A DNA stretch of 64,000 nt, from the IMG/VR virus record IMGVR_UViG_3300031952_000001, positions 62,001-126,000 of that record. One strand, written 5' to 3'. Below, one piece after another: positions 23,207 through 60,449 of the stretch. Below the pieces are notes generated by a model. That model was not told the DNA's origin. It saw only the letters and a list, made by a program, of their open reading frames with translations, and made no database searches. The position numbers and the translations under genes were made by a program. Positions within the stretch are counted from its first letter, which is position 1, and every line of letters begins with the position of its first letter.

Positions 23207-23464
23207 ATGAAGCTCGGCCTCAACAGCGCTGCTCTGAGACGGGTCGCCCAGGCTCTTCGCTTGGGCCAGGCCGCCGAGCAGCAAGGCCTCGATTGGAGGG
23301 ACCTCCAGGACCTCTCCGTCGAGGTCACCGCCGCGGTCGAGCAGCAGGACCTGCGCCGGCTCATGGAGGCCGTCGAGGACATGACGAGCCTCATACTCTC
23401 CAACATCCAGATGCCGGCGGAGACGGACGTCAGCGGGGCCTTCCCTCGTACAGGGAGCAGGTAG
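23207..23464 (+). CDS. small protein with the shared N-terminal leader
   Basis: MKLGLNSAALRRVAQ. Confidence 0.65.
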   Translation: MKLGLNSAALRRVAQALRLGQAAEQQGLDWRDLQDLSVEVTAAVEQQDLRRLMEAVEDMTSLILSNIQMPAETDVSGAFPRTGSR

Positions 23465-24502
23465 ATGCTCTCTATCGGCATTCAGGATCAGGGTCTTTTT
23501 CGTCTTGCGCGGAAGATGGGGATGGGGTTCCTCGCGGATCCGCCGATCCCCTACGGTGAGAAGTACAAGGGCGTCATCGAGTATCCAGGCTTCCACACGA
23601 CCAAGGACTTCGACATCGCAGCTGCCTACGCCGGCCAGAGGGTGTACTACTCGTACACGAGCCAGGACGAGGACGGCACCCACTACGTCACGGACTACCC
23701 CGTGGTCGTGGCGCTCAACATGGCCGGGCACCACGCTGTGACCGACTACGACGCCATCGAGATGGTGAAGCCGGGGCTCATGACCGCCCTGGGTGAGATC
23801 GTGAAGGGCGGGTACGGCGAAGACGGCCTGACGGAAGACTCTACCGATGATGAGATCCGGAATGCTGCCGACCACTACACGGAGATGGCAGGCGATTCCG
23901 AGAGGGATCAGCAGGACGATCCCATAGGGTACATCACGGAGGATGCGTTCTCTCACTTCGGGAATGCCCTTTGCATGATCCAGGAGGACGAGAGGTTCCC
24001 GGATGCCGTGCGCCTCTTCATGCAGACCGGGGAGTTCCCGGACGAGCTTCTGATCGAGGCGACGAATCAGTTCCGCTACGAAGAGGATGTGAATGAGAAG
24101 CGTGTCGTAGGTGTCTGGTACCTGACCCCCATGGCAGGGGAGGCCGTTACCTATGACGCTCAAGAGACCGACGAAGGGGATGAGAACAGCGAAGTTTCTA
24201 TCGATTCTCGGTGGCCTGGGTTCGATGTGCCTTTCGAAGATGACCTGATGGGAGGGATGGAGAGTTTCAACTCTCAGCAGGTCTACGAAGGTGAGGCTTC
24301 TGGGATCCAGGAGGAAGGCCCCCAGCTCCCTCTGTTCACTCCTGAGCAGCTCCCGCCACCAGAGCCTGACATCCAGTACCACGGGACCACATACCTGAGA
24401 CTCCTTCAGGCGGCCCCCTTCTTGGCTGATATACTGCCGGTACCTCCAAGCCCTCCGTTCCGAGCGGAGGAGCAGGAGATGTCCCAGGCGGTTGGAGAGT
24501 AG
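23465..24502 (+). CDS. putative circularly permuted ADP-ribosyltransferase-fold protein with the shared leader
   Basis: GFHTTKDFDIAAAYA near the N-terminus and YHGTT near the C-terminus. Confidence 0.45.
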   Translation: MLSIGIQDQGLFRLARKMGMGFLADPPIPYGEKYKGVIEYPGFHTTKDFDIAAAYAGQRVYYSYTSQDEDGTHYVTDYPVVVALNMAGHHAVTDYDAIEMVKPGLMTALGEIVKGGYGEDGLTEDSTDDEIRNAADHYTEMAGDSERDQQDDPIGYITEDAFSHFGNALCMIQEDERFPDAVRLFMQTGEFPDELLIEATNQFRYEEDVNEKRVVGVWYLTPMAGEAVTYDAQETDEGDENSEVSIDSRWPGFDVPFEDDLMGGMESFNSQQVYEGEASGIQEEGPQLPLFTPEQLPPPEPDIQYHGTTYLRLLQAAPFLADILPVPPSPPFRAEEQEMSQAVGE

Positions 24503-24503
24503 A

Positions 24504-25928
24504 ATGAGCACCGATTCCTTCACGACCATGATCCGCGGGTTCGACGTGACGGTCGAAGCCGCTGAGTCCTCGGATACCTACAAGGTCCACGTCGTCGAGG
24601 GTGGCGGTGTTCCCTGGACGGTGGAGCTTCCGATCAACCTGGAGAACTTCGAAGGTCAGGAAGATGATGACGTCGATGGTTCCAACGAGCTGCTGACCCT
24701 GGTGGCCGAGGCGGCTGTGGACTTGTTCGAATCTTCCCGCGATACCCTGGGGCAGGGTGCCGGTGCGTTGGAGGTTGCTGCAATGAAGAAGACTCAAGGT
24801 ACGATCACGGCGTGCGGCAGCGAGTGGCAGGACTACTACCTCCAGCTCAAGGGCACCACCTTCGAGGGCAAGGCCGAGGAGCTGGTCAAGCAGTGGCTCG
24901 ACCTCAACCTCAACGAGCCCGAGTGGGAGGACAAGACCAAGGACCTCCGCAAGGAGAAGCAGAAGCTCATCTACGAGCTGAACCTGCTGGAGCTGGAGCT
25001 GCTCAAGAACAGCCCCGAGCAGCAGATGCTCATCATCATGGCGGGTCGCAAGAGGGCCTACCTGAACGACATCGAGATCCCACTCTACCTGGACATCTTT
25101 GCAGGTAGCCCGCAGGAGGCCGAGGCCGTCAACATCATGAAGGGGATCCTCGACATCGACGAGCGCATCCAGAGCACCAACGACACCTGCGAGGGGTGGG
25201 ACGAGCACTGGAAGCAGGTGGAGTCCATAGAGATGCAGCTCCAGGACCTCATCCTCACCTCGGTGCAGGAGCACGCGATCCACACCCCCTCGGGCGCAGC
25301 CGGCGCTCCGAACATGGCGAACGACATCGCCGAGCTGATGGAGGGGATCGATCTGCACGCGCCGCTGTCGGCTCGCAAGAGGGCACAGCTGCTGGCTGAC
25401 GACGGGTTCGAGAGCGTAGAGCGGTTCGGTCCGGACGAGAGTGCCGATCCCTATGAGGATGGATACCAGGCGGGTCTGAAAGGATCTTCTCCTGCGGACA
25501 ACCCCTACCGTGGCGATTCTGGGGGTTTCGATCAGTGGGTGGAAGGCCTCAACGACGCGAGAAGCAAGAAGCGGTCTCGCCGCGCCTTCGAGGAGTTCGA
25601 AACTGCCGAGGACCGCGAGACCGAGGGCGGCGAGATCCGGCACGACCTCGACACCGGCTGCATCGACCCCGAGGACTACAAGTTCGAGCCGAACCAGAAG
25701 GTGACGCTCAACAAGAAGCTGGAACTCATGATCGGCGGCGGCGTGCCCAAGGACTACGCCAAGGGCACCTCGTGCGTGGTCGAGTCTCGCTACGACGGCG
25801 AGGGAGACTTCTACTACGTCCGCTTCGAGGACGGCCAGATGGCCCGAGTCCTCTTCAGCGACCTCACGGGAGGGAAGAAGAAAGAGTCCTCTTTCTTCGG
25901 CTACATGGAAGGCCTGCTGGAGGCGTAG
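24504..25928 (+). CDS. acidic multi-module hypothetical protein
   Basis: Long ORF; RKRAQ junction; SH3/KOW-like C-terminal segment. Confidence 0.7.
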   Translation: MSTDSFTTMIRGFDVTVEAAESSDTYKVHVVEGGGVPWTVELPINLENFEGQEDDDVDGSNELLTLVAEAAVDLFESSRDTLGQGAGALEVAAMKKTQGTITACGSEWQDYYLQLKGTTFEGKAEELVKQWLDLNLNEPEWEDKTKDLRKEKQKLIYELNLLELELLKNSPEQQMLIIMAGRKRAYLNDIEIPLYLDIFAGSPQEAEAVNIMKGILDIDERIQSTNDTCEGWDEHWKQVESIEMQLQDLILTSVQEHAIHTPSGAAGAPNMANDIAELMEGIDLHAPLSARKRAQLLADDGFESVERFGPDESADPYEDGYQAGLKGSSPADNPYRGDSGGFDQWVEGLNDARSKKRSRRAFEEFETAEDRETEGGEIRHDLDTGCIDPEDYKFEPNQKVTLNKKLELMIGGGVPKDYAKGTSCVVESRYDGEGDFYYVRFEDGQMARVLFSDLTGGKKKESSFFGYMEGLLEA

Positions 25929-25929
25929 C

Positions 25930-26244
25930 ATGCTGGCGTTCGGCATCACCGACTCTGGGCTCCTTCGTCTGTCGCAGCTCTTGGCTCCTGCCGCGGAGCA
26001 GGAGAGTGCTCAAAACCCTCAAGTCGAGATCTACTGGTGGGAGGAGGACAACCCCCTCGAAGGCGGTTGGGTCTGGCACTTCGTAGGGGTAGACGAGCTT
26101 GTACATCCCATCGAAGGCAAGCTGGGCAAGAATCCTTCTGCGGATGACGAGGACCTGAAGTTCGAAGCCACCATGGATCCGGAGTTTCCTGGCGGCGACG
26201 TTCGGTTCGTGGTAGACCGGGACAACACTCCGATCTTCGGGTAG
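25930..26244 (+). CDS. small protein with the shared N-terminal leader
   Basis: MLAFGITDSGLLRLSQ. Confidence 0.65.
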   Translation: MLAFGITDSGLLRLSQLLAPAAEQESAQNPQVEIYWWEEDNPLEGGWVWHFVGVDELVHPIEGKLGKNPSADDEDLKFEATMDPEFPGGDVRFVVDRDNTPIFG

Positions 26245-26250
26245 GACACC

Positions 26251-26466
26251 ATGACGAGACACTTCATAGGACTCCTGATCGTGACCGCCTTCTTGACCCT
26301 CCTGTTCTTCCACGGCTGCACCAACCCCATGGTGCCCCTCGTGCAGGCGAAGTACCCCGAGTGCCAGCTCATCTCCTACGACGAGCTGGGCGGGGGCTAC
26401 CTCGAAGCGAAGCTCCAGTGTGGCCCCGTGATCAAGGTCGTCAAGATGCGGGATAGTCGCCAGTAG
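26251..26466 (+). CDS. putative lipoprotein
   Basis: Hydrophobic N-terminus ending FFHG-C. Confidence 0.5.
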   Translation: MTRHFIGLLIVTAFLTLLFFHGCTNPMVPLVQAKYPECQLISYDELGGGYLEAKLQCGPVIKVVKMRDSRQ

Positions 26467-26469
26467 ACA

Positions 26470-26865
26470 ATGTTCGAGACCTACCAGCTGGACCAGCGGC
26501 AGTCCCTCCCTTTGGAGTCCAAGATCCGCCTGGCGATGATGCGCATCAAGGCTTGGCACGATCACTGGGACGGCGAGGGCCTGGTGGTCGTCGACAACGG
26601 CTCCTTGGCCTCAAAGGTACTTGTACACTTGTCCAGTGAGTTGGACCCGGGCATCCCGAGCATCTACCCCAACGACAGGTCTCCCGCCTACCACCCTATC
26701 GTGCCTTTCATGGTGGGTGGCGACCTGGAGAGCAAGAGGGATTGGCTGAAGAACGGATGCAACTCCCTGGGCTCTGAATGCCCTCAGTGCCGGCCGCTCA
26801 GTGTGTGGCTGGACGAAGACATCCACAAGTACGTTGTCGAAGTCATGGGGAAATCGGACGTGTGA
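26470..26865 (+). CDS. internally deleted PAPS-reductase-family-like protein
   Basis: N-terminal QRQSLPLESKI..RIKAW and C-terminal GCN..RPLSVWLDEDI; SGGKDS is degenerate. Confidence 0.5.
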   Translation: MFETYQLDQRQSLPLESKIRLAMMRIKAWHDHWDGEGLVVVDNGSLASKVLVHLSSELDPGIPSIYPNDRSPAYHPIVPFMVGGDLESKRDWLKNGCNSLGSECPQCRPLSVWLDEDIHKYVVEVMGKSDV

Positions 26866-26869
26866 CCTC

Positions 26870-26898
26870 TTGACATCCTGCTTAGGCATGTTTATATT
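26870..26898 (+). promoter_or_regulatory. sigma70-type promoter
   Basis: TTGACA-N17-TATATT. Confidence 0.7.
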
Positions 26899-26938
26899 GC
26901 GAAGGCAGGGGCATCATGCCCGGGAAGAGAGGGACGAG

Positions 26939-27406
26939 ATGGCACGGAAGGTGAAAGTCGAGATCAGCGAGGACGGGAAGGTTCTGGAGTCGGCGGTAGC
27001 GCTCAGCTGGATGGCGTTCCTGAACGGGAAGTGGACGAAGGAGCGCCCGGAGCGTCCGGGCAAGTACGTCATTGCCAACCGGGCCGGCCGGGTCACGGGC
27101 GAGGTGTTCGTCTTCTACGACGCCGAGACCAAGGAGCTGACGGCGCGGGTGCGCGACGGCGCGCTGTGCACGATCAAGGAGCTGGACGGGGAGCACATCT
27201 GGTGGTGGTCCCGGGCCATGCCCCAGCTGATGCCGGCCGCGGTGCCGAGGAAGCTGGGAGAGCGCGTGACCGAGGAAGACGTGTTCGGCACGCCCTCGGA
27301 GATCGAGAACCACCGCAAGTGGCTCCAGCAGCGCGAGAAGAACTACCGGGAGTCCGGGAGATCGCACCTGGTGGCCGTTCCGGAGGCGGGTCCTGAACTC
27401 AATTAG
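26939..27406 (+). CDS. hypothetical protein
   Basis: Follows the promoter; SD GAGAGGG. Confidence 0.7.
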   Translation: MARKVKVEISEDGKVLESAVALSWMAFLNGKWTKERPERPGKYVIANRAGRVTGEVFVFYDAETKELTARVRDGALCTIKELDGEHIWWWSRAMPQLMPAAVPRKLGERVTEEDVFGTPSEIENHRKWLQQREKNYRESGRSHLVAVPEAGPELN

Positions 27407-27432
27407 ACAGCTCGGCCCGCTCGACTTCTATG

Positions 27433-27546
27433 GGGTCCTGCGGTTGGAGACGGCTCCGACGCTGTTCTACCCGCCGTACGCCGCAGGACCCTCACCACAG
27501 ACCTGCCACAAGTTCGTGTATGCTATACACCCACATTACGGGTGGG
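27433..27546 (+). ncRNA. candidate structured RNA or leader
   Basis: Perfect 11-bp stem 27433-27443/27481-27491 plus two further hairpins in a 190-nt intergenic gap. Confidence 0.35.
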
Positions 27547-27600
27547 CGAGTGATAGCCCTCCCGAGAAGAGCACCTTCAAACAAGAGGAGAAGAAGATCG

Positions 27601-27786
27601 ATGGGGAAGCAGATAACTCACGAAAGTCGTCCCACCGGTCCGCGGGCCGCTAAGATCGCGTGGACCTACTTTGAGAGCACCTACGGGATGCCGCCGATGC
27701 AGCTGCACTTCGACGTGATGGCTCGTCAGTGGGTGGGGACGTACGAAGACGAGGAGCACAGGATGCCGGCTGAGGAGCCGGCCTGA
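27601..27786 (+). CDS. hypothetical protein
   Basis: SD GAGGAG upstream. Confidence 0.55.
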   Translation: MGKQITHESRPTGPRAAKIAWTYFESTYGMPPMQLHFDVMARQWVGTYEDEEHRMPAEEPA

Positions 27787-27793
27787 GGGGCAC

Positions 27794-28015
27794 ATGCAAA
27801 AAGGCACTTCCCATCAGACGATCTACTTGCTGACCTTCGAGGAGGTCATCGAACTCATCAAGGCGCACATCGAGGAGCAGGAGAAGAAGCCTCTCAGCGT
27901 ACCCTTGAACGTGAACATCAACCCCGACAAGAAGATGTTCGAGGTCACCGAGGGGGTCCGCCTCATCAAGATCGATGGGCCCTCTCAGATGTCAGGTGGG
28001 GGGAATCTCAACTGA
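27794..28015 (+). CDS. hypothetical protein
   Basis: Operon-coupled ORF. Confidence 0.6.
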   Translation: MQKGTSHQTIYLLTFEEVIELIKAHIEEQEKKPLSVPLNVNINPDKKMFEVTEGVRLIKIDGPSQMSGGGNLN

Positions 28016-28350
28016 TGCACCCTGGTGAGGCACGGGTCGGAGGGTTCGTGTACTTCCCCGTCGAGGGCACTCGGGACGGGGAGGCCGTGGTCCGCATCGC
28101 CCGTGCTCAGGTCGAGTGCATCATCTTCCCGGGCACCACGAACGAGAGCTACAGCCTGATCGAGCTGTCGTCGGAGGGCAAGTCCAAGGCCTACGAGCTG
28201 AAGCCGGCGGACTGCTACTCGACCGCCGAGGCCGCCCGGAAGGATCAGATCCTGGGGATCTACGTCGAGCTGGAGGTTCTGCGGAGCAAGCTCCAGGCAC
28301 TCGGGGACCACTCCCTGACCGATAGTCGCTGGGGCAGGAGGGGCCAATGA
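28015..28350 (+). CDS. hypothetical protein
   Basis: Operon-coupled ORF. Confidence 0.6.
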   Translation: MHPGEARVGGFVYFPVEGTRDGEAVVRIARAQVECIIFPGTTNESYSLIELSSEGKSKAYELKPADCYSTAEAARKDQILGIYVELEVLRSKLQALGDHSLTDSRWGRRGQ

Positions 28351-28480
28351 CCTACAATCTCGTTCTTCTGGGTGTGGTATTGATCATCCTGGGCCGCTGG
28401 GTGTACATTACATTCAGCCACACCCACCGCATGCGCCTGGCCTTGCTGGGCCTGGAGGAAGCACTGGAGAGGAGCGCACT

Positions 28481-29023
28481 TTGGGACAACTCTACAAGCC
28501 ATTCTGGAAAGTCGATCACTACGACGCTCATGACATCCCCGAGGGAGCCGCTTTCTGTATCGAAGGCTTCCGACGGCGGATCCGATTCGAGGTCGAAGGT
28601 GGTTCGTCTGGTGCGAGCATCCGGATCATCGAATCGAAGCTGAAGAAGAAGGTCCCCGATCCGGTCTTCTTCTGGCAGGTCGGCAAGGGCGTTCGTCACG
28701 AGATGCCTGAGCTGGCGGTGGTCCGTTTCAAGATCGATCCGCTCGTGGCCTGCATGCTGATGATGACGGGCCCGTTCGCCGTTCTGGAGTTCTACCGAAG
28801 GCAGAGCCCGAAGAAGGGCAAGGACGTCGTGGTCTCCACAACGGGTCCGGGAGACCAGGGGGTCCTTCTCGCGATCCCGTACCACAAGGGCTTCAAGACC
28901 ATCCGGTCTATGGCCTGGTGCCTGGACGACCCCAGGCTCGATGCCGTCGAGAAGGAAGTCAAGAAGGGGAAGACCTGGAAGCCGGTCGAGCAGCCGGATC
29001 CGTTCGTCTTCGTGGAGGACTGA
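28481..29023 (+). CDS. hypothetical protein
   Basis: TTG start after GAGGAG; overlaps ORF 28347..28643. Confidence 0.6.
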   Translation: MGQLYKPFWKVDHYDAHDIPEGAAFCIEGFRRRIRFEVEGGSSGASIRIIESKLKKKVPDPVFFWQVGKGVRHEMPELAVVRFKIDPLVACMLMMTGPFAVLEFYRRQSPKKGKDVVVSTTGPGDQGVLLAIPYHKGFKTIRSMAWCLDDPRLDAVEKEVKKGKTWKPVEQPDPFVFVED

Positions 29024-29024
29024 C

Positions 29025-29228
29025 ATGGCAAAGTGCGCGCAGTGTGGCAAGGAGTTTCCCTGGTACCAGCTGTTCCCCAGGAAGAAGGACGGACGGGACA
29101 TCTGTACAGTATGCAGGACACCCCCGATCCGGAGCCAGAAGGAGATCAGAGTCTCCCCACGGAGGCAGATGACTCAGGCGGACGTCGACCTTCAGGTGCT
29201 CGCCAACGAGATGGACAGGGAGGCGTAG
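29025..29228 (+). CDS. small zinc-finger protein
   Basis: CAQC ... CTVC. Confidence 0.6.
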   Translation: MAKCAQCGKEFPWYQLFPRKKDGRDICTVCRTPPIRSQKEIRVSPRRQMTQADVDLQVLANEMDREA

Positions 29229-29483
29229 ATGGAAGAGGCTTACGCAGAAGACAGTGCTCCGGAGCCCGAGAACTCCACCCCCATGATCCGTCAAGTCATC
29301 GACTGTCCGCGGTGTAACCGCCGCGGTCTGATGGAGGTCCCGGACATCCAGGACTGGGCGGAGTACACCTGCCTGAAGTGCGGGTACACCGTGAAGGAGC
29401 ACTCGTGGAGTGCTCGGGACGCCGTCCGCAGGCTGGTCAAGGCGGTCCACGATCAGGCCCGCAAGAACAGGATCTCCGCATGA
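29229..29483 (+). CDS. small zinc-finger protein
   Basis: CPRC ... CLKC. Confidence 0.6.
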   Translation: MEEAYAEDSAPEPENSTPMIRQVIDCPRCNRRGLMEVPDIQDWAEYTCLKCGYTVKEHSWSARDAVRRLVKAVHDQARKNRISA

Positions 29484-29761
29484 GCGACGAGCACAACCTT
29501 GCGGTGCCGTTCACGGTGCGCTGCGGGCACCTGGTCTGCGCGTTCAAGAGCCCCAAGGTCGGCCGTTTGGTCCTGTGCGAGCACTACAGCCACCGCAGCA
29601 AGCAGATCGGGCACTGCTCCCTTACAGGGGAGCGCCTCATCGTGAGGGCGAACCTCGATGGAATCCCTATAGCGAAGCGCGGCTGGAGGTGCCTGGAGGG
29701 TGAGCACCTCTGGGAGAAACTTCAGAGTTCCGACTTCGCCAGTGATACAGTAGCTCCCTGA
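29480..29761 (+). CDS. small Cys/His-rich protein
   Basis: ATGA overlap with the previous gene. Confidence 0.55.
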   Translation: MSDEHNLAVPFTVRCGHLVCAFKSPKVGRLVLCEHYSHRSKQIGHCSLTGERLIVRANLDGIPIAKRGWRCLEGEHLWEKLQSSDFASDTVAP

Positions 29762-29769
29762 AAGAGAGG

Positions 29770-30288
29770 ATGACGACCATGCCGAAGAAGAAGACCACCA
29801 TACCGCCGGACGGGCCCGATCTCACGCCGGTTGTAGAGACCCCAGCTCCGGTTCTGCACGAGAGGAACTACCCCAGGGGGCCCGCCTTCATGCGGGTCAA
29901 CGTGAAGGTCCTAGCGGAGGACGGTGAGACGCTCCTCCGCACCGAGGTCTGCGATGTCTATCTGGAGTGCGACTGCTCCTACAAGGAGTCCGAGCTGGAG
30001 GCTATTGGCAGTTCTGCTGAAGCCGCTCGCTTCTTCGTGTGGAGCACGGGTTTGGACAAGCTGATTGCCCCCCCTGAAGGGACCCACCCGGAGCAGACTC
30101 TCAAGGCCATTCAGCGGCAGACGATCCGAGTTCCTGTTCCCGGGGAGGCCATCTCCTTGGAGGAGGCTCGAAGGCGGGATCTCGGCAATGAGGACTTCAG
30201 CCCGCGCTTTGCGAAGCGTAAGGATGACATGGAGTCTCATAAGAGGCCCAAGCCAGCCCCCAACCCGTTCATCCCACCCGCAGAATAG
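29770..30288 (+). CDS. hypothetical protein
   Basis: SD GAGAGG. Confidence 0.6.
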   Translation: MTTMPKKKTTIPPDGPDLTPVVETPAPVLHERNYPRGPAFMRVNVKVLAEDGETLLRTEVCDVYLECDCSYKESELEAIGSSAEAARFFVWSTGLDKLIAPPEGTHPEQTLKAIQRQTIRVPVPGEAISLEEARRRDLGNEDFSPRFAKRKDDMESHKRPKPAPNPFIPPAE

Positions 30289-30291
30289 CCC

Positions 30292-30319
30292 TTGACAGCC
30301 GGAATCTCATGTATATATT
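30292..30319 (+). promoter_or_regulatory. sigma70-type promoter
   Basis: TTGACA-N16-TATATT. Confidence 0.7.
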
Positions 30320-30341
30320 AGAGGTGGCTAGGAGGGACACC

Positions 30342-30893
30342 ATGAGAACCATTTTTCTTGCCTGTATCGCGATTGGATCGTGCCTGTTCGTGGACTCTTT
30401 GGATGCCCAGTGCTGCCGGGTCCAGCTGGCTGTGAGCGGCCAGAACCAGAACGTGGTCGGGATCATCGTCGGCATGTCGGAGGCCAACGCCACGCCCGGC
30501 AAGGTCGTGGCTGTGGCAGAGGGTGCGGCCAAAGGGGCAACGTGCGTCGACTACACGTTCCTGAAGGACGCGCGGGGCAAGATGACCGAGTGCAAGTACG
30601 ACTGCTACCTCATCTTCGGAGGGGCCGTCTGCCGGGAGAACATCTGCGACTACGTGATCTGTAATGAGCCACTTGGTAGCTATTGCTCAAACCCAACGGG
30701 CCCGAATCCCGGGAAGTTGCTCACGATGGCGAGCGGCGGCATCTGCGATCCGACCGGAGATTTCGCCCCGATTCCCGGGGAGTGCTACTACCCGGAGATC
30801 GAGATCGACTGCGGGAGCGCTGAGGCCTGCGTGACTGTTGGTTGGGGGAGAGACTTCTGTCGGGTTCTTCCACCGAAGAAAGATCGTCGGTAG
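30342..30893 (+). CDS. secreted Cys-rich protein
   Basis: Signal peptide ending SLDA-Q; 14 Cys in the mature part. Confidence 0.6.
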   Translation: MRTIFLACIAIGSCLFVDSLDAQCCRVQLAVSGQNQNVVGIIVGMSEANATPGKVVAVAEGAAKGATCVDYTFLKDARGKMTECKYDCYLIFGGAVCRENICDYVICNEPLGSYCSNPTGPNPGKLLTMASGGICDPTGDFAPIPGECYYPEIEIDCGSAEACVTVGWGRDFCRVLPPKKDRR

Positions 30894-30984
30894 GGATGAG
30901 GGCGCTCTCGCCTGGTTCAGAGACGTCCCCCCTGAGCTTGGGAGTGCCTTCTTCCGTGCCGACGACGAAGGGTTGAGGATCTGC

Positions 30985-31683: not shown

Positions 31684-31701
31684 GAAACCATAGGAGGAAA
31701 C

Positions 31702-31989
31702 ATGTCAGTTGAAGCGTTGGGGAAGAAGAAGATCGAAGAGATCATCCAGCTGCGAAGCAAGGGCAAGACGATCTCGGAGACGGCGTGGACGCTCGGGATC
31801 GCCCCGTGGCATGTCGCGTACATCTCCAGGTTCCTGAAGCTGTGCGTGACGGCCGAGGAGTTCCAGTGGATCGAGGAGGAGGCCGAGGCCAACAACTTCG
31901 GCACGGTGGGCGAGTTCGTCATGGACGTGTTCAACCGGACCTACGAGGAGTTCTACAAGAAGGCTCCGCGCAAGAAGAAGTCCGCCTGA
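31702..31989 (+). CDS. small HTH protein
   Basis: LRSKGKTISETAWTLGI. Confidence 0.55.
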   Translation: MSVEALGKKKIEEIIQLRSKGKTISETAWTLGIAPWHVAYISRFLKLCVTAEEFQWIEEEAEANNFGTVGEFVMDVFNRTYEEFYKKAPRKKKSA

Positions 31990-32708
31990 TGGGAAAGAAG
32001 GCCGCCAAGAGAGACCCTTCTGTAGTTGTTGGGTATGTGCGGGTTTCGATGGACCGTCAGAAACTAGGACCTGTGGTCCAGAGAAAGATTCTGGCTGGGT
32101 GGTGCGTCTTGCGAGGTTTGCATCTTGCTGCGGTATTTACGGACAAGGGTGTTTCTGGAGGGCTCCAGGTAGACCAGAGACCAGGGTTACAAGAGGCCCT
32201 CGTTGCGGTACGGGCTTATAATGCTGGCACCCTTCTTGTTGCTAGCCGGGATCGTCTTTCCCGCGACATCGTAACTGCTACGATGATTGAGAGAGGCTTG
32301 AATCGTTCGGGCACCTCTATTGTATCAGCAGATGGCCTTGGCAACGGAGACAGCCCTGCGGAGGTGTTCATTCGTACGGTTGTGAATGGCATGGCGCAGT
32401 ATGGACGTGCTGTTATATCTGAAAGAACCCGCGCCGCTCTGAGATTGAAGGTCTCTCGTGGAGAGAAGACGGGTGGTGCCGCCCCTTATGGATACCAGTT
32501 AGCAAGAGACGAAATTCATCTCGTTCAAATGAAGGAGGAGATGAAAGTAATTGCGAGGATACAAAAACTTCATAAAGAGGGGCTTTCGATTCGAAGAATT
32601 GCAGACTTACTGACTGAAGAAGAGACTCCTAGTCGAGGACATCGGTGGCATCGTACCACGGTTGAGCGTTTGCTCAACCGAGACGATAGGAAGAGGGATG
32701 GTGCCTGA
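31989..32708 (+). CDS. serine recombinase (resolvase catalytic domain plus short recombinase/HTH domain)
   Basis: GYVRVS, DKGVSG, RPGL, SRDRLSR, ISERTRAAL, GGAAPYGY; AT-richer DNA. Confidence 0.88.
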   Translation: MGKKAAKRDPSVVVGYVRVSMDRQKLGPVVQRKILAGWCVLRGLHLAAVFTDKGVSGGLQVDQRPGLQEALVAVRAYNAGTLLVASRDRLSRDIVTATMIERGLNRSGTSIVSADGLGNGDSPAEVFIRTVVNGMAQYGRAVISERTRAALRLKVSRGEKTGGAAPYGYQLARDEIHLVQMKEEMKVIARIQKLHKEGLSIRRIADLLTEEETPSRGHRWHRTTVERLLNRDDRKRDGA

Positions 32709-33076
32709 TGGACAAGCCTCCCGTCACCTACGACAAGCCTCTCTGGAGGCAGCTCGACCCCGAGCGTGCGAAGGCCTACGATGCCCTCCCGGAGGAGCAG
32801 CGGCAGAAGCTCAACGAGGCGGCTGCGAAGACCTTGGAGACCTCCGTCTTCGATGTCCTCGATCCCGACTTCTTCGGCGACGAGGAGGTCGACGACGAGA
32901 ACGACGAGAACACCTTCCAGTGCTCGGAGTGCGGAGACGATGATCCGTCCTCTCTCAAGAACTGCGAGGTGTGCGGGGGTTTGATCTGTCCCACATGTAG
33001 GTCTACGAACCGCCTTCGCGTCTTATGCACCGGATGCGATCCAGACTGCCTGGACTCATGCAGGGATAACGATTAG
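32708..33076 (+). CDS. acidic Cys-rich hypothetical protein
   Basis: Several CxxC motifs. Confidence 0.6.
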   Translation: MDKPPVTYDKPLWRQLDPERAKAYDALPEEQRQKLNEAAAKTLETSVFDVLDPDFFGDEEVDDENDENTFQCSECGDDDPSSLKNCEVCGGLICPTCRSTNRLRVLCTGCDPDCLDSCRDND

Positions 33077-33182
33077 TCTTTTCGGTGGAGTCTGTCGGGT
33101 GTAGGGGCTTCTAGCTCAAAATTTCCGAGAAGCTCGAAGGGTGTGGTATGATCCCCGGTACCGTTATGGAGAGGAGGTTTGG

Positions 33183-34334
33183 ATGTTACCTAGAATTCTC
33201 ATAACGTTCGTTCTGTTCGGGATGGCGTCGTTGACGGTCAGCGAAGCCGCATTGAGCGAGGCCGCTCCCGACGCGCCGTCCGGGCTGACGGCCGAGGAGC
33301 AGACCACCTTTGAGTCGATGATCGAGCAGGTGAACGTCACCGAGGCCGTGGAGGAGCCAGGAAACGAGGAGGAGAGCGCTGAGGCAGTGGTATTGGAGGG
33401 CCTGGAGCCCGTCGTGGTGCCCGACAGCGTGAACGTGACCTTGGAGACTGTGTGGGAGAAGTCCCCGGACGACATGCCCCTCCTGGACCGGCTGGTGAAG
33501 GGTGTCCTGAGGGCCCGGACCCTCCCGTTCGAGAAAGACAAGGATGGGAAGAAGAAGCCTCCGAAGTTCTACTGGGAGAGTGGCGGGGTGCCGATCCCCG
33601 AGGAAGAGATGATCCCGCTGGCGACTCAGTGGGCCGCAACCTTCCTGGCTTCTGTGGAGGAGGTGAAGAAGCACACCGGTATCCAGCTCCCTCTCTGGGG
33701 AGCCTTTGCGACCCTGGCGAACGAGGGTGGCTTCTACGGGTGCAGTCTGAACTTCGAGGCCCGCAAGTGGGCATCCACGCACTCCTGCAAGAAGCTGACG
33801 ACCGAGACCTGGCACGGGAAGACCGTGCGACGGAAGATCGAGACGAAGCTCGTCGACAAGTTCCGCCAGACCTACACATGTGAGGAAGTGTGGGACATTA
33901 TCCACGACCCCCACTACAAGGACGCCAAGGTCGAGGTGAAGGGTCGGGACGGCAAGATGAAGTGGGTGAAGCTCGCGAACAAGGCCGACGGCGGTCCCTG
34001 GCAACAGAGGTTCAGTGTCAAGACGATGACCCGGGAGCGGTTCGATCTGCTCATGTCCATGCAGCCGGGGGTGTACATCGGCGCGGAGGAGATGGCCCGT
34101 AGGTCAATATCCTACATGCCTCGGTTCAAGGCCAAGGAGCCCCACCCAAGGCCTTGGATGCTCTGGCCGGGTTGGAACCCTTACACGAGCAGGGCGTTCT
34201 CGTACGATTCCAAGATCACGATGATAGCTCGTCTCCTCGGGGCCAGAAAGACCGAGATCGAGCGGGGGGCCTTGGTACCCGACCCCAGGGAGAAGCGCCG
34301 GCAAGAGTACGAGGCTCGGAAGGCCCAGCACTAA
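33183..34334 (+). CDS. exported protein, possibly lysozyme/SLT-like
   Basis: Signal peptide; ATLANEGGF (possible catalytic Glu) and DGGPWQ resemble SLT motifs I and II. Confidence 0.35.
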   Translation: MLPRILITFVLFGMASLTVSEAALSEAAPDAPSGLTAEEQTTFESMIEQVNVTEAVEEPGNEEESAEAVVLEGLEPVVVPDSVNVTLETVWEKSPDDMPLLDRLVKGVLRARTLPFEKDKDGKKKPPKFYWESGGVPIPEEEMIPLATQWAATFLASVEEVKKHTGIQLPLWGAFATLANEGGFYGCSLNFEARKWASTHSCKKLTTETWHGKTVRRKIETKLVDKFRQTYTCEEVWDIIHDPHYKDAKVEVKGRDGKMKWVKLANKADGGPWQQRFSVKTMTRERFDLLMSMQPGVYIGAEEMARRSISYMPRFKAKEPHPRPWMLWPGWNPYTSRAFSYDSKITMIARLLGARKTEIERGALVPDPREKRRQEYEARKAQH

Positions 34335-34408
34335 CTTTAGAAATCCTCCGCCTCTCAGTGCTATACTCTGGCGGGTTATCAATCTAACAGAACGCAGCGG
34401 GACAGAAC

Positions 34409-35593
34409 ATGATCCGCACCTGCAAAGTGAAGCTCGGTCGTGCGCCAAAACAGGAGGCGAAGCTCACTTACGTTTTGGGTCTCTGTTGTGACCTCTACAA
34501 CGCAGCTCTCCAGCAGCGACGGGATGCCTGGGCTAAGCAGAAGGTCTCGCTTTCGTACTATGCGCAGACCAAGGAACTCACTCAGCTCCGTGCAGATGAT
34601 GAGGAGTACCGGCGGCTGCCGGCTCAGATGACTCGCATGACGTCACTATACCGCGTAGATAGGGCCTTTCAGGGGTTTTGCGGACGGTGTAGACGCGGTG
34701 AGAATCCCGGCTTCCCTCGGTTCCGCAGCCGAGATCGTTTCTCTACTTTGATGTTCTCTACGCAGGATTGGCGCATCAAGGGCAAGAGCCTGATATTGAA
34801 GAACGATGCAGATCCTATTGTCTTGCAAATGCGTAACACGATTCATCATGAGGGCCAGATCAAAGGTCTTCGTGTTGTCCGAAGTGCAACGCGATGGTGG
34901 GCGCATTTTCTTGTGGATGTAGGCCCTACCCCAGCTGTAAAGAAGTCCGATCACGGCGTCGGGATCGACGTTGGTCTTCGAACTTTCGCGACTCTGTCCG
35001 ACGGTAACGTCGTCGAACATCCGCGGTTCTTGAAGCAGAGCCTGGAGCAGCTGAAGTCGGTCCAGCAGGAGCTGAGCCGGAAGAAGAGGGGCTCCAAGAA
35101 CCGCGCGAAGGCGAAGCTCGTCGTCGCGCGGGTACACGAGAAGATCGCGAATCGTCGTCGAGACTTCGTACATCAGACCGTGTCCTCCTTGGTGAAGAAG
35201 TACGACGGGTTTGCGCTGGAGAAGCTCGACGTTTGCGCCATGACAAGCACGGAGCGCAAAGTCGAGGGTTTGGACAAGAAGCAATCTCGTGGTCTCCGAA
35301 GGGGGATCATGGACTCTGGCTGGTCTCTGTTCGGTGCACACCTGGCCTCCAAAGCGGAAGAAGCTGGGCTGCCGGTTGTGCACGTCGATCCGAAAGGCAC
35401 TTCGCAGAGATGTTCGGCTTGCGGAACCATAGTGCGAAAAACACTTCGGGACCGTGTGCACGAATGCTTTGCCTGTGGTCTCGTGCTGGATCGGGATGAG
35501 AACGCAGCCAGGAACATCTACGACCTGGGGCTCAGGTCGGCGTCCGGAAGCGCAGCAACAGCTAGTTGTGCTGAAGGCGCGGAGGTTCTGTGA
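34409..35593 (+). CDS. tnpB: TnpB RNA-guided endonuclease (IS200/IS605 family), no TnpA
   Basis: LYNAAL, PRFRS, RuvC residues GIDVG, FALEKL and DRDENAARNI, zinc finger CSAC/CFAC. Confidence 0.93.
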   Translation: MIRTCKVKLGRAPKQEAKLTYVLGLCCDLYNAALQQRRDAWAKQKVSLSYYAQTKELTQLRADDEEYRRLPAQMTRMTSLYRVDRAFQGFCGRCRRGENPGFPRFRSRDRFSTLMFSTQDWRIKGKSLILKNDADPIVLQMRNTIHHEGQIKGLRVVRSATRWWAHFLVDVGPTPAVKKSDHGVGIDVGLRTFATLSDGNVVEHPRFLKQSLEQLKSVQQELSRKKRGSKNRAKAKLVVARVHEKIANRRRDFVHQTVSSLVKKYDGFALEKLDVCAMTSTERKVEGLDKKQSRGLRRGIMDSGWSLFGAHLASKAEEAGLPVVHVDPKGTSQRCSACGTIVRKTLRDRVHECFACGLVLDRDENAARNIYDLGLRSASGSAATASCAEGAEVL

Positions 35594-35603
35594 AATGGGA
35601 ACT

Positions 35604-36119
35604 ATGTCTCGCGTGTACAAAGGGATCTCTGGTTCAGCTCTCGGTCGGGTGGCTTCTGCCATGGGGTTGTCCACACGCACTTTCCGCCGAGGTCGCGTTG
35701 CCCATCGGATCACGGCGATGGGGGACCCCGAGCTGACGGAGCTGGGAGGGAACGGGGTCAACCTGACCATCCGCTCCGCCGAGCACCCCGAGTTCCCGCC
35801 GCTCAACCCCAACCAGGTGGACATGCCGAACCCCAGGGATCACTACGTCGTCGTGGAGGACACGGCGAACGGTCCGTGGGTCACGGCCGGCGGTATCATG
35901 GTCTCCGTGTACCAGGTGGAAGACGACGGGACAATCGTTCAGGAGATCCCAGGGGACTTCGCCCCCGAGTACGACGACTACCTGGAGACCATGGAAGAGC
36001 CTGTAGGCCAGGGTGAGGACTGGGCGCGGGTTCTCGACTACTTCAACCTGGACGTGGCCGACATCGACCGCTGGAAGAACGAGGTTCTGGACAGCCTCAA
36101 GACGGGGCGGAGCTTTTAA
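35604..36119 (+). CDS. acidic protein with the shared leader
   Basis: MSRVYKGISGSALGRVA (an alternative ATG lies at 35595). Confidence 0.65.
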   Translation: MSRVYKGISGSALGRVASAMGLSTRTFRRGRVAHRITAMGDPELTELGGNGVNLTIRSAEHPEFPPLNPNQVDMPNPRDHYVVVEDTANGPWVTAGGIMVSVYQVEDDGTIVQEIPGDFAPEYDDYLETMEEPVGQGEDWARVLDYFNLDVADIDRWKNEVLDSLKTGRSF

Positions 36120-36216
36120 GAACCCCAGGCAAGGTCGAGTAAACTGGTGGTCCATGCAGCTGACAGCGAAATCATCTCGAAAGACGGCCCGTCCGTACGG
36201 CGGTAGGCGGAAGCAC

Positions 36217-36783
36217 ATGAATCGATACCAGGAAACCCTTTGCAAGTACGCTCAAGATCTGTCAACGGAGACCGTCACTCCAAGCTCCCAGACCGACTCC
36301 TCGACGATGGATCCCTCCCAGCTCCAGCCGGGGCAGCCGGTCTACTCCCCCGAGGGCAAGGAGTTCGTGGTCCTGAACAACCCCGCGGGGGAGTCGCAGA
36401 AGGTGGTCATGCCTTCGGATCAGCAGGGTTCACAGCTCCCGCAAGGGGTGACGACCCTTGACGATACTGAGCTGTCGACGGAGTACACACTCTCATCCCC
36501 CTCTACCGAGACAAAGATCCAGTCCTCTCGCAAGAGGGCCGCGGAGCACATGAACCTGCCGTCCGGGTACGCGAAGAGCATCTCGACCGGCGAGGGCAAG
36601 AAGACGGAGACGGCCGGCCTGAGGATCGGACAAGAGGGCTACGTCGACATCATGACCTCGATCCAGGACATGGTCGAGGCCGGGTACGACACGGTCGACG
36701 TGGTCTTGAACATTGGCGAGCTGTACCCCCGGGACCTCGGTGAAAGGGTCCTGGAGGAAGCTCGCGAAAGAGGGATACTCTGA
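36217..36783 (+). CDS. hypothetical protein
   Basis: RKRAA junction; acidic. Confidence 0.65.
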   Translation: MNRYQETLCKYAQDLSTETVTPSSQTDSSTMDPSQLQPGQPVYSPEGKEFVVLNNPAGESQKVVMPSDQQGSQLPQGVTTLDDTELSTEYTLSSPSTETKIQSSRKRAAEHMNLPSGYAKSISTGEGKKTETAGLRIGQEGYVDIMTSIQDMVEAGYDTVDVVLNIGELYPRDLGERVLEEARERGIL

Positions 36784-37256
36784 TGCGTAAAGGGATCTCG
36801 GATCAAGGGCTGAAGAGACTTTCCGCTGCCGTCAGGAAGAACGGCTGGAATCCTGCGAACCCCCACTGGGATCCTTCCAAGGAGCCTTCCAAAGAGCAGT
36901 GGAAAGAGATCGACGAGGGCCGTCGGAAGAACGCTCCGCCTGAGCCGGGGGAGGGGAAGGGGCATCTCTCTCAAGGTTCTACTATTCGTCTTGAGAGCGG
37001 AGACTTTGGGTGGGACTTCCTCATCGTCAACGAGGACACTGGAGAAGACATTCTCATCCAGACGGACTGGGACTACCCCGGGGTTGCGACTACGTTCGGG
37101 TGGCCTGGTCACGAGCACGATTCTACCGATGGAACCATCGACTGTCCCGAATGTGGCAAGAGCGCGATGGAAATGATCAACGAAGCCCGGGAGTGGCTCA
37201 GTGATCACATTGGGGACGTTGCCGAGGACCCTGGGTACTTCGGCGGGGACGAGTAG
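36783..37256 (+). CDS. acidic protein with the shared leader
   Basis: MRKGISDQGLKRLSA. Confidence 0.7.
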   Translation: MRKGISDQGLKRLSAAVRKNGWNPANPHWDPSKEPSKEQWKEIDEGRRKNAPPEPGEGKGHLSQGSTIRLESGDFGWDFLIVNEDTGEDILIQTDWDYPGVATTFGWPGHEHDSTDGTIDCPECGKSAMEMINEAREWLSDHIGDVAEDPGYFGGDE

Positions 37257-37270
37257 GAAGGAACTTCAAG

Positions 37271-38932
37271 ATGCGTAAAGGCATTGTGGACGATGGGTAC
37301 GGCAGGATCGCTGGGAGCGTTCTGAAGAAGACTGCCTTGATGGAGGACGAGTACGCCCAGGATCTCGCTGAGAAGCTCGTCGGCAACTGGCAGAAGTTCG
37401 AGTCGTTCGGGTGGGGCAGCCAGCCCGAGGAGAACCCGGAGAACTGGACCATCGTCTACACCTCGAACAGGGACTCGGGGCTCACCGATCAGGCGAACGC
37501 TGCGGCCATCGAGGAGATCATGGGCCAGTTCCCCGAGGACCAGGTCGTGGCGGAGAGCCACGGGCACTGGGCTGTCGGTCATGTGGACGGCTACTCGATC
37601 CGTGTGTACGAGCCCGACGGTACCCTCACCCCGGCGTTCAAGGCGTGGTCTGAGATCCAGACGTCCTTGGAGAACTACCCTGTTCTCGATGAGAGCAAAT
37701 ACTCTGAGATGGAGTACGAAGCCTCTCTCAAAAACTGTGCGCAGGCTGTCGCGCACTACATGAACCGCCATCCCGACGAGAGGGTGCAGGACTTCTACAC
37801 GGATGCGGATGATGAGCAGCTTGGGGCGGAGTTCTACCAGTGGGCTTCCGATTCAGGGGTCGACACTTCCAGCAGCGACGATCAAGGGTACTACCCTGAC
37901 GACAGCGACATCGAGGAGTGGGTTCAGGAGGTCATCGTCCCAAAGCTCCGTGCGTGGGAGCCCGGTGAGGAAGGCTACGAAGAACCCGATCCCCTCGCGG
38001 AGGGCTTCGCCACGGGTCCCGTGCCCGTAGACCCCCGACAGACCTCGCTCCCCTTCAAGGGTGGCCGGCGCAGGGCCCAGGCAGCCCCACAGCTCCCCTC
38101 GGACGAGGAGGAGCTGAACCCCGACGAGATGGAGGAGATGTCCCCTACGCCGGAGCAGCAGGGCCTGGAGAAGTTCGACTGGAACGACTACATCTGGGGT
38201 CCGTTCCGCAAGAAGCCCGGTCTGCGTCTCAGGGCCCAGATGAGCACTCAGGACGACGCCATCGTACGGATGGTCGAGCAGGAGGATGCCCGTCTGGTGA
38301 AGTACCGCGGCGGGTTCGCACTCGTTCCGGTCGACGGTTACGCCTATCCGGTCGATCAGGCCGGCGCGGAGCTGGCGCTCGCTCACGGGGCCGAGGACTA
38401 CACCCAGCCGAAGCAGAAGGCTGGTGCAAGGGAGGTAGGAATGTACAAAGGGGTTCCGGACGAGGGCCTGGAGAGGCTCGCAAGGATCTTCAAGGCGCAG
38501 TCGGATCCGGGCGTGAGCCCCGCCGGCCCGCTTCCCGGTGATGAGGATCTGGACGAGGCCGAGTCCGAGGGGGAGGCCGAGGAGCGCGGAGAGATGATCT
38601 CCCCCGAGCAAGCTCTGTCAAAGGCGAAGGAGCTGTGGGACGAGGACACCGCGGCGCACATCGTCTCTGCCCAGGGTCAGAAGGGGTACGATGCCTGGTT
38701 CATTGAGGCCGAAGTCTTCGTCCCGAGCGAGGAGATGGCGGACTTCCTTCAGTTCATCGAAGCTCCGGGTCTGGAGGAGTGGAAGGACGCTCTGTACGAG
38801 GCTTACGACGATCAGCCCGGTGTCGAGGGCAACCCTGGTCGGTGGGCTCATACTAGCTCCGTGAGCAACGTCATCGAGGAGAGCAACGGCATCAGGTTCA
38901 CGCTGACCTACAGCGCGTTCATGGACATCTGA
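37271..38932 (+). CDS. multi-module acidic protein with the shared leader and an internal second leader/start at 38441
   Basis: MRKGIVDDGYGRIA; RRRAQ and RLRAQ junctions; internal MYKGVPDEGLERLA. Confidence 0.75.
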   Translation: MRKGIVDDGYGRIAGSVLKKTALMEDEYAQDLAEKLVGNWQKFESFGWGSQPEENPENWTIVYTSNRDSGLTDQANAAAIEEIMGQFPEDQVVAESHGHWAVGHVDGYSIRVYEPDGTLTPAFKAWSEIQTSLENYPVLDESKYSEMEYEASLKNCAQAVAHYMNRHPDERVQDFYTDADDEQLGAEFYQWASDSGVDTSSSDDQGYYPDDSDIEEWVQEVIVPKLRAWEPGEEGYEEPDPLAEGFATGPVPVDPRQTSLPFKGGRRRAQAAPQLPSDEEELNPDEMEEMSPTPEQQGLEKFDWNDYIWGPFRKKPGLRLRAQMSTQDDAIVRMVEQEDARLVKYRGGFALVPVDGYAYPVDQAGAELALAHGAEDYTQPKQKAGAREVGMYKGVPDEGLERLARIFKAQSDPGVSPAGPLPGDEDLDEAESEGEAEERGEMISPEQALSKAKELWDEDTAAHIVSAQGQKGYDAWFIEAEVFVPSEEMADFLQFIEAPGLEEWKDALYEAYDDQPGVEGNPGRWAHTSSVSNVIEESNGIRFTLTYSAFMDI

Positions 38933-38942
38933 GGAGTCGATC

Positions 38943-39260
38943 ATGAAGATGCACAGAGGCGTTTCGGACGAGGGGCTGAGAAGGGTTGCCCTGAGCCTCA
39001 CGGACGAACCCGCCTACATCCCGGACATCCAGCCCGACACCCGGGAGGAGGACTTCAGCGACATCCAGGAGGGCTTGGAGCGGTACGAAGAGTACCTGCG
39101 GGCCTCCTTGGCAGCGATCCAGACCATCGATTTCGAGGCTATCGAGGGGGCTGCGAACGGTTCGAACCCCAGGACGCTGACCGAAGCCATCAGGGCTCTC
39201 AGAGAGAGTTCTGAAGGGATGCAAGGTCTCCTGCACAACATCGACGTTTTCGGAGCCTAA
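38943..39260 (+). CDS. acidic protein with the shared leader
   Basis: MKMHRGVSDEGLRRVA. Confidence 0.7.
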   Translation: MKMHRGVSDEGLRRVALSLTDEPAYIPDIQPDTREEDFSDIQEGLERYEEYLRASLAAIQTIDFEAIEGAANGSNPRTLTEAIRALRESSEGMQGLLHNIDVFGA

Positions 39261-39344: not shown

Positions 39345-39713
39345 GGGCCGGAAAGGTTTCGACAGCGGATGTGACGGTGTTCACTGCGTGTACCGCTTGT
39401 AAGTCAGCGGTTTAAAACGACTTTCAACAGACAAATGCCGATGCAGATGTCATCCCCTTCCCGAAGATGGCCGTTCCGTCGCTCCAGCGAGAGGCGGCTT
39501 AGGGAACGTCGGACGTGCGAGGTGCTCGTAACTCGCACGGCCGGCGCAATTCGAGACGAGCAACCCACGGTTTGACAGGTCGCACCGAGAAGCAGCCTGG
39601 ACCCTGGGAGTGCAGTCGTGCGGCACTCTCTGAGACCTTCAGCGCGACCACACACGTAACGAAGTGAACGCTCGACTCTACTGGACGGGGTTTCGATACC
39701 CCCCGGTCCACCA
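39345..39713 (+). ncRNA. ssrA: tmRNA (transfer-messenger RNA)
   Basis: 5' GGGCCGGAAAGGTTTCGAC; 3' GACGGGGTTTCGATACCCC-CCGGTCC-ACCA; acceptor stem with G3.U wobble; tag ORF 39437-39502 reads ADADVIPFPKMAVPSLQREAA*. Confidence 0.92.
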
Positions 39714-40264: not shown

Positions 40265-40267
40265 CTA

Positions 40268-60446: not shown

Positions 60447-60449
60447 GTG

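Follow-up and report, generated by a model that had tools for sequence, protein, structure and literature searches.

The DNA analysed here, referred to as the window, was a 64-kb stretch (positions 62,001-126,000) of the 211,982-bp viral contig IMGVR_UViG_3300031952_000001, which is the same as Ga0315294_10000012. The subject of the analysis was a peptide of about 20 residues, referred to as the tag, which was found at the start of otherwise unrelated predicted proteins; the sequences behind it are referred to as cargos. An earlier note on this DNA had listed eight tagged proteins and had proposed that the tag was a modular addressing peptide for the capsid. All eight of its peptides were found again at their positions, but the one at 38441 was internal to the open reading frame (ORF) 37271-38932 and did not belong to a separate gene, and the window held nine copies rather than eight. 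A strict consensus expression gave eight matches in the six-frame translation of the window, all on the + strand and all beginning 2-6 residues after a Met, whereas 100 shuffles that kept the dinucleotide composition had 0.02 matches on average and never more than 1. The ninth copy, MRGIPPEGFVRLA at 52951, was added by a looser pattern and by a profile hidden Markov model (HMM) built from the copies. The nine tags scored 23-29 bits with this HMM, and the rest of the window scored 4.4 bits or less. The consensus was M-x(0-5)-[KR]-G-[IV]-x-D-x-G-[LF]-x-R-[LIV]-[AS]-x-x-hydrophobic-[KR], with a frequent A/G-Q end, and the cargo began about 20-22 residues from the protein start. The cargos were unrelated to each other, as the earlier note had described, and showed no mutual BLASTP similarity at E<0.05. 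The tagged genes of the window, with lengths in amino acids (aa), were as follows.

23207-23464, + strand: gene A, 85 aa; tag MKLGLNSAALRRVAQALRLGQ, which diverges from the others (D to S and G to A) and has an HMM score of 23.6 bits
23465-24502, + strand: gene B, 345 aa; tag MLSIGIQDQGLFRLARK ahead of a well-folded domain
25930-26244, + strand: gene C, 104 aa; tag MLAFGITDSGLLRLSQ, found by pattern and HMM
35604-36119, + strand: gene D, 171 aa; tag MSRVYKGISGSALGRVAS, found by pattern and HMM
36783-37256, + strand: gene E, 157 aa; tag MRKGISDQGLKRLSAAVRK, HMM score 28.6 bits
37271-38932, + strand: gene F, 553 aa; tag MRKGIVDDGYGRIAGS, a phrog_4313 domain, an RRRAQ linker, then a second tag and module
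38441-38932, + strand: internal second tag of gene F (F2) with a 140-aa module; MYKGVPDEGLERLARIFKAQ, in frame, at residue 391 of 553
38943-39260, + strand: gene G, 105 aa; tag MKMHRGVSDEGLRRVALS, found by pattern and HMM
52951-53430, + strand: gene H, 159 aa; tag MRGIPPEGFVRLARFVAQ, found by the loose pattern with an HMM score of 25.5 bits; the JGI gene call begins at the same Met

No stop codon intervened in gene F before 38441, and AAGGGAGGT, a strong ribosome-binding site, lay 6 nt upstream of the ATG at this position. The internal in-frame tag was kept in five relatives, and F2 is a second module or, possibly, an internal translation start. The domain behind the first tag of gene F was common to hypothetical proteins of Streptomyces phages (phrog_4313, 3e-11), where it was untagged. 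At least two further tagged genes were found elsewhere on the same contig, outside the window. The part of the contig examined came to about 62% of the 212 kb, with 17.8-56 kb and 155-196 kb left out; from 126 to 155 kb, to the right of the window, only small unannotated genes were present and no further tags were found. The motif scan suggested by the earlier note gave nine copies in the window and more on the rest of the contig and in related phages.

Selection on the peptide and exchange of its cargos

The nine start regions, aligned from 60 nt upstream to 90 nt downstream, showed 43% identity with four invariant columns, and no shared upstream DNA element was found in them beyond purine-rich ribosome-binding sites. 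Fifteen tags, drawn from several lineages, used GGC, GGG, GGA, and GGT for the invariant Gly and AGG, CGG, CGT, and AGA for the invariant Arg, the latter being codons of both families. Among the paralogs of the window, the third-position identity was 0.39 where the residue was identical. The tag DNA was only about 52% identical across lineages and paralogs, with the key residues invariant and the codons mixed, and the same peptide was found in related phages across GC contents of 0.35-0.62. The tag peptide of gene D was identical in the relatives, with synonymous differences only. The earlier note had considered that the motif might be a DNA repeat or a ribosome-binding-site artefact, with synonymous sites conserved more than amino acids; this was ruled out by the 43% identity and four invariant columns of the start regions, the mixed codons, and the third-position identity of 0.39. 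An mRNA structure at the starts was also ruled out, since the six start regions that were folded showed none (z-scores -1.5 to +1.5). The tag is under selection at the protein level.

The tag is also a portable N-terminal extension, bolted on to independent families: a dozen or more with no relation to each other carried it. The Pfam matches to DUF7249 and DUF5662 began at residues 23 and 22 of their tagged proteins, respectively, and DUF5661 proteins occurred both tagged (P0099; contig gene 5977-6687) and untagged (L051). A widespread small domain carried the tag in two members only, and the other members had a membrane anchor or nothing. The same domain, tag-borne in low-GC relatives, was embedded at residues 357-475 (nt 15624-15980) of an untagged 1353-aa protein of the window, where it was 47% identical to the second tagged protein of L051 (E 6e-29). 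No description of the motif, or of DUF5661, DUF5662, or DUF7249, came up in string searches of the literature.

The family of gene B gave the clearest view of how the tag joins its cargo. An AlphaFold2 model of B, made from 50 homologs, had a confident body with a mean predicted local distance difference test (pLDDT) score of 87 and a predicted template modelling score of 0.85. Residues 1-6 were disordered in the model, and residues 8-17 formed a short helix at a pLDDT of about 54 that was detached from the fold, which is the usual picture of a peptide folding on partner binding. The tag is thus predicted to begin as a flexible segment and to continue as a short basic amphipathic helix that is not part of the cargo fold. 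Homologs of B numbered 52, of which 50 were aligned, and the tag was present in 16 of these 50 (B itself and 15 homologs). The untagged homologs had a different helix, a direct start at the conserved M-x-F-L-A-x-P-P, or extra N-terminal domains. The tagged members retained a Met at the junction, which suggests that translation once started there, before the tag was placed in front. In divergent pairs of the family, the 11-residue tag core was 54% identical versus 46% for the folded domain, even though the model shows the tag as flexible. The family also had the invariant motifs GFHTT, QxRY, and YHGTT. A Foldseek search with the model of B gave no significant match (best E 1.1 in PDB and 0.25 in BFVD), and B may represent either a novel fold or an enzyme that has diverged very far. 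An ESM Atlas lead for B pointed to ART-PolyVal (score 0.86); identity as an ADP-ribosyltransferase was not confirmed, since Pfam was empty and Foldseek found nothing better than these E values despite a model with a pLDDT of 87.

Comparison of the window with a relative of about 90% identity over 23-39.3 kb showed that four of the nine larger rearrangements began or ended inside a tag. In gene A, the relative had a 320-bp module inserted right after the tag, 53 nt into the gene. In gene C, the synteny broke at 25977, 16 codons (47 nt) into the gene, and the relative had an extra 450-bp module. Gene E was absent from the relative, and the indel ran from tag to tag, from the ATG of E (36783) to 37280, 9 nt past the ATG of F. 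At the internal tag of gene F, the cargo was replaced in the relative after codon 20 (61 nt in) by a module of the phrog_15314 type. This coincidence of tags and breakpoints was beyond chance because the tag-coding DNA made up only about 3% of the stretch. Gene B as a whole was missing from the same relative. The tag MKMHRGVSDEGL was found on three unrelated cargos in three relatives, and the tag of gene G on two other unrelated cargos in the relatives L019 and L025. A syntenic 192-kb relative with about 50% protein identity carried eight tagged genes nearly in tandem, and four of its tags contained a near-identical 48-nt segment with sharp edges, in which all differences were synonymous. The sharp edges together with the synonymous-only differences indicate that recombination at the tag occurs while the peptide stays under selection.

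Distribution and gene neighbourhood of the tag

The contig had no nucleotide relatives in a set of 50,697 deposited phage genomes, where the only relative of its proteins to be found was one cargo domain. A degenerate DNA pattern, which covered one tag subtype and whose matches were rescored with the HMM, gave 6 stretches on 4 contigs in IMG/VR and 24 stretches in the metagenome collection. In one genome for each of 185,579 prokaryotic species, the same pattern gave 14 matches, about the number expected by chance. After rescoring, the real copies were all on phage-like contigs, which were close relatives, 146-192-kb phages with a GC content of about 0.60, and contigs with a GC content of 0.35-0.40. 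A host sorting signal was rejected as the identity of the tag: the 14 bacterial and archaeal matches were mostly internal or low-scoring and none stood in an array, the best being an isolated 66-aa ORF with 18.8 bits. The tag therefore belongs to a phage system, because no convincing copy was found in the genomes of these 185,579 bacterial and archaeal species. A profile search of 1.84 billion representative proteins gave 17 matches at E<=0.001, of which 12 were true tags, located at residue 1-4 or as a second internal copy, and the other five were leucine-rich repeat (LRR) or low-complexity repeats. Membership of the tag in the RNI-like LRR family was also rejected, since each module had a single unit with no arrays and LRR proteins appeared only as false positives of the profile search.

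All of the tag-bearing phages had a common neck and tail module. The model of its 382-aa neck/tail protein (pLDDT 81.5) matched structures of phage necks and tail terminators, including the neck of phage 812 (E 7e-7), with T4 gp15 also among the matches listed, and the alignment of this protein family retrieved 33 viral loci, including those of the contig itself, the close relative, and 146-, 188-, and 192-kb phages. On the basis of this common module, the tag is by its sequence distribution a trait of one clade of uncultured, contractile-tailed phages of about 150-210 kb. One member of the clade, a 146-kb phage, encoded a homolog of the major vault protein (MVP) (L053 1-1943, Ga0180437_10000153), with MVP_shoulder at 2e-26 and Vault_3 at 1e-9, both above the Pfam cut-offs. 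This gene lay about 8 kb upstream of a tagged gene, and DUF6166 and DUF7352 genes came after it. A vault-like shell protein is unexpected in a phage, and no MVP homolog was found in the window.

Part of the tagged genes lay in the block of virion genes, which had the following order on the contig.

Portal (1429 aa, with insertions), a 352-aa protein, and the head maturation protease (phrog_18299, 9e-30)
A 724-aa scaffold-like protein, a 257-aa protein, and the major head protein (phrog_2522, 1e-56)
Some ten more genes, small or without annotation, and an HNH endonuclease, then a 342-aa protein
A 164-aa gene with the degenerate tag MKKGITPEAAQRL
A 236-aa gene in which DUF5661 comes after the canonical tag MRRNAGGITDDGFSRLASFVQAK
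Tail terminator, sheath, and tube genes, immediately downstream of the tagged DUF5661 gene

The major head protein was assigned to the HK97 type by its PHROG family only. Several of the approximately ten genes after it encoded membrane-spanning N-termini, and one had a weak holin match (phrog_1299, E 0.0026). The portal gene (L097 2529-6818) also contained endonuclease-like insertions. Among the 33 loci of the clade, 17 had one or more tagged genes (HMM score of 12 bits or more) within 10 kb upstream of the terminator gene, always co-oriented with it. The DUF5661 gene beside the terminator had the tag, degenerate or not, in most of the lineages where this gene was found, and a 5-kb low-GC contig carried six tagged genes around neck and tail structural genes. 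The related Virus Rctr197k had the same structural genes and no tagged genes at those positions.

Within the window, the tagged genes formed two islands (23.2-26.2 kb and 35.6-39.3 kb) on the strand of two large genes, with short or absent gaps. The untagged neighbours of the first island were as follows.

14556-18617, + strand: multi-module protein, 1353 aa; upstream of the first island, with short or absent gaps
20174-23203, + strand: acidic protein, 1009 aa; directly upstream of gene A
24492-25928, + strand: 478-aa gene between B and C; its start overlaps the stop of B, with an RKRAQ linker and a weak RMF-like stretch

Gene A started 4 nt after the stop of the 1009-aa gene, whose C-terminal module resembled, by eye, the module inserted after the tag of gene A in the relative. 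The 1009-aa gene also stood beside a tag island in the syntenic 192-kb relative (L056). Pfam, PHROGs, phage tblastn, and the ESM Atlas gave no function for the 1009-aa and 1353-aa proteins. An IS605-type TnpB element (34368-35612, ORF 34409-35593; OrfB_IS605 1e-29, Cas12f1-like TNB domain 7e-21) lay immediately upstream of gene D, and its insertion, present in this genome only, is recent because the element was absent from the 90%-identical relative. A serine recombinase gene (31785-32708, Resolvase 2e-26) was also absent from this relative, in which 31991-32703 had no counterpart. Directly downstream of the second island, the phage encoded a transfer-messenger RNA (tmRNA) at 39345-39713 (Rfam 82 bits), with a predicted tag peptide of its own ending in REAA, followed by tRNA-Met (40193-40265) and tRNA-Pro (41030-41108); an HNH-like ORF (39734-40105) lay among these genes. 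A 73-aa ORF on the - strand (55771-55992) consisted mostly of DDDEGP repeats, with 62% D+E.

The linkers of these proteins pointed to a possible processing site. Many tags ended in [KR]-[AG]-Q, and the motif R[RK][RQK]A[QG] occurred at six sites in the approximately 150 kb of coding sequence examined.

16143, 17007, and 17319: in the 1353-aa protein
25374: in the 478-aa protein
38066: in the protein of gene F
L074 189: in the scaffold-like protein of the close relative, beside the major head protein gene

For RR[RQK]A[QG], the window had 4 occurrences versus 0.1 expected from shuffles. In the gene F of the relative, an inserted module was bounded by two R[RK][RQK]A[QG] motifs. As a lead from six occurrences, the motif may be a common processing site for head-associated proteins. 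A stand-alone PhageMetallopep (PF18894) gene in the replication module, about 1 kb to the left of the window (contig 60317-61009, L054 4267-4959), is a candidate for the enzyme that would process the multi-module proteins.

Destination of the tagged proteins

The best explanation, which we advance tentatively, is that the tag loads proteins into the virion in a manner similar to the capsid-targeting sequence (CTS) of T4. The peptide would be a portable docking tag that binds a conserved component of the virion assembly machinery of the clade. The tagged proteins would be incorporated in the particle, most likely inside the head, and would enter the next host along with the DNA. The cargos would be small acidic accessory proteins with a fast turnover, plausibly host-takeover or anti-defence factors, and one conserved DUF5661 protein from the neck gene block would be a cargo as well. 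Virion loading was favoured because of the placement of tagged genes in the virion block, the presence of a head protease, and a cargo domain in common with the giant multi-module protein. The modular addressing proposed by the earlier note was well supported, as the tag was N-terminal, conserved at the protein level, bolted on to unrelated families, and associated with cargo exchange, but the evidence for its capsid destination was circumstantial. We infer the virion destination, the receptor, and any removal of the tag by the head protease. In its fullest form, which we consider possible and hold with more reserve, the tag would be an independently evolved, clade-wide loading code, in which one 20-residue peptide and one conserved receptor in the head or neck suffice for arbitrary proteins, and ten or more exchangeable pre-made effectors are co-injected per phage of about 150-210 kb.

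Several observations weighed against a place in the virion. The cargos were acidic, as the earlier note had seen, with a D+E fraction of 0.19-0.24 compared with the window-wide mean of 0.17 and a net charge of -6 to -50. The internal proteins of T4 have a basic character, and packed DNA would accommodate acidic proteins less readily. Both tag islands of the window lay outside the head module and downstream of a replication/recombination module that encoded PolA, a clamp loader, RecA with an inserted sequence, SbcCD, and ThyX. The internal tag copies (F2 and P0089) would fit a strictly N-terminal signal only with internal starts. The portal, the protease, the scaffold-like protein, and the major head protein had no tag (maximum 6.3 bits). 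No conserved cleavage motif was found after the tags, and none common to the tags and the propeptide of the major head protein was recognised. The RecA gene of the replication module (window 1429-3795) was itself split by an insertion of about 500 residues between the RecA N-terminal domain (residues 48-221) and RecA_C (728-780), and this arrangement suggests an intein.

Packaged phage effectors are an established concept (PMC5512222, PMC3012670). Like the CTS of the T4 proteins IPI, IPII, IPIII, and Alt, the tag was a short N-terminal peptide common to otherwise unrelated proteins, its cargo set was hypervariable among close relatives while the leader was kept, and the phage encoded a head maturation protease and a scaffold-type head. 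Unlike the CTS, the tag was longer and helix-forming with an invariant G...G..R, and a protease site was not evident; the cargos were acidic, most tagged genes stood outside the head module, and internal copies were present. The likeness, known here from sequence alone, held in every feature that a sequence can test and involved no homology, and T4 internal-protein families in PHROGs and Pfam gave no match at E<=0.1. In the Dar system of P1, accessory anti-defence proteins (DarB, DdrB) are loaded into the head by N-terminal determinants and partly processed (PMC9024508, PMC5512222). The Dar system is a hierarchy of large proteins without a common short motif, whereas one motif was found here on ten or more small proteins. 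The cargo of Family 2 encapsulins carries the N-terminal motif LARLANEFFS, and a peptide at a flexible terminus docks the cargo inside a shell of the HK97 fold (PMC8049743). Several tags contained G-L-x-R-L-A-x-x-F, which resembled the L-x-R-L-A-x-x-F of this motif, a likeness of about five residues seen by eye and too short to score. Unlike the encapsulin genes, in which the cargo genes adjoin the shell gene, the tagged gene closest to the gene of the major head protein was about 6 kb away from it here.

The tagged proteins can also be compared with the polyvalent proteins and MuF-fusion effectors of phages reportedly described by Iyer et al. in 2017. As in these, many conflict domains would be delivered with the DNA, and one domain was tag-borne in one lineage and embedded in the 1353-aa multi-module protein here. 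A ParB_N match on a cargo (20.6 bits, below the cut-off) was a weak lead. Unlike the polyvalent and MuF proteins, the tagged proteins were mostly single modules, in which the short peptide would replace a fused anchor domain; no MuF, portal-fusion, or other anchor domain was found in the tagged proteins or the neighbouring large proteins. The effectors of Photorhabdus virulence cassettes and other extracellular contractile injection systems have a disordered N-terminal signal of about 50 aa, poorly conserved, that loads diverse payloads into a particle derived from a contractile tail. The tagged genes here similarly stood beside terminator, sheath, and tube genes. The lumen of a phage tail tube, unlike that of these particles, is occupied by the tape measure protein.

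The alternative that survived best, which we nevertheless regard as unlikely, is that the tag docks to a common hub outside the virion, such as a phage or host chaperone, a replication or transcription machine, or a phage-built compartment, and so gathers accessory proteins in the cell. The position of both window islands behind the replication/recombination module agrees with such a hub, as do the untagged head core proteins and the acidity of the cargos, which resembles that of many cytoplasmic DNA-mimic or inhibitor proteins. The MVP homolog located 8 kb from a tagged gene in one clade member also makes non-capsid shells conceivable, but it was present in one lineage only, with no homolog in the window, and no candidate hub was identified. 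A hub of this kind does not predict that co-oriented tagged genes recur in the neck and tail block across the clade.

It is improbable that the tag is a self-association or folding element, that is, an oligomerisation helix or cap that serves each protein's own function and is not an address. The short amphipathic helix in the AlphaFold2 model and the likeness of the tag to one RNI-type leucine-rich repeat unit (xTDxGLxRLA), which produced the false positives of the profile search, are consistent with this. However, the model put the tag, at low confidence, outside the folded part of B, proteins of the family fold and persist when they lack the tag, and the tag was always a single unit and never a repeat array. 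A generic helix would also not hold G, D, G, and R invariant across unrelated cargos. We attach equally little likelihood to a regulatory N-terminus, in which the tag would be a protease or degradation recognition signal or a processing signal that times a set of genes. The phage encodes both a head protease and the separate PhageMetallopep peptidase, and the [KR]-[AG]-Q ends of many tags, the RR[RQ]A[QG] linkers at the module borders of the neighbours, and the internal tag copies at module borders would suit such a function. On the other hand, four of the nine window tags (B, D, E, and G) had no [AG]-Q end, no common cleavage motif was found, and a degron leaves the placement in the virion block unexplained. 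That the repeat acts chiefly at the DNA level, as a recombination site and cassette junction at which accessory genes are shuffled and the peptide is incidental, is highly improbable, since the breakpoints within tags and the near-identical 48-nt segment that speak for it are set against tag DNA of such low identity with invariant residues and mixed codons, near-identical copies that differ only synonymously, and a peptide that persists from a GC content of 0.35 to 0.62, so that recombination looks like a by-product.

To our knowledge, only a few model phages (T4 and P1) are known to have short, transferable peptides that target proteins to the particle, and these peptides are poorly conserved. 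By its sequence, the motif described here appears to be an independently evolved, unusually well conserved, clade-wide N-terminal tag, and the exchange of gene cassettes in these phages is focused at the boundary of the DNA that encodes it. If virion loading is correct, the peptide would be a compact tag for loading proteins into phage capsids, and if the loading code as a whole is correct, it would be a natural portable delivery tag that is far more conserved and widespread than the CTS of T4. If the destination is not the virion, the tag would still mark a hub in the biology of giant phages. The tag offers a sequence handle for listing, directly from metagenomes, those accessory proteins of these phages that are candidates for co-injection or co-localisation.

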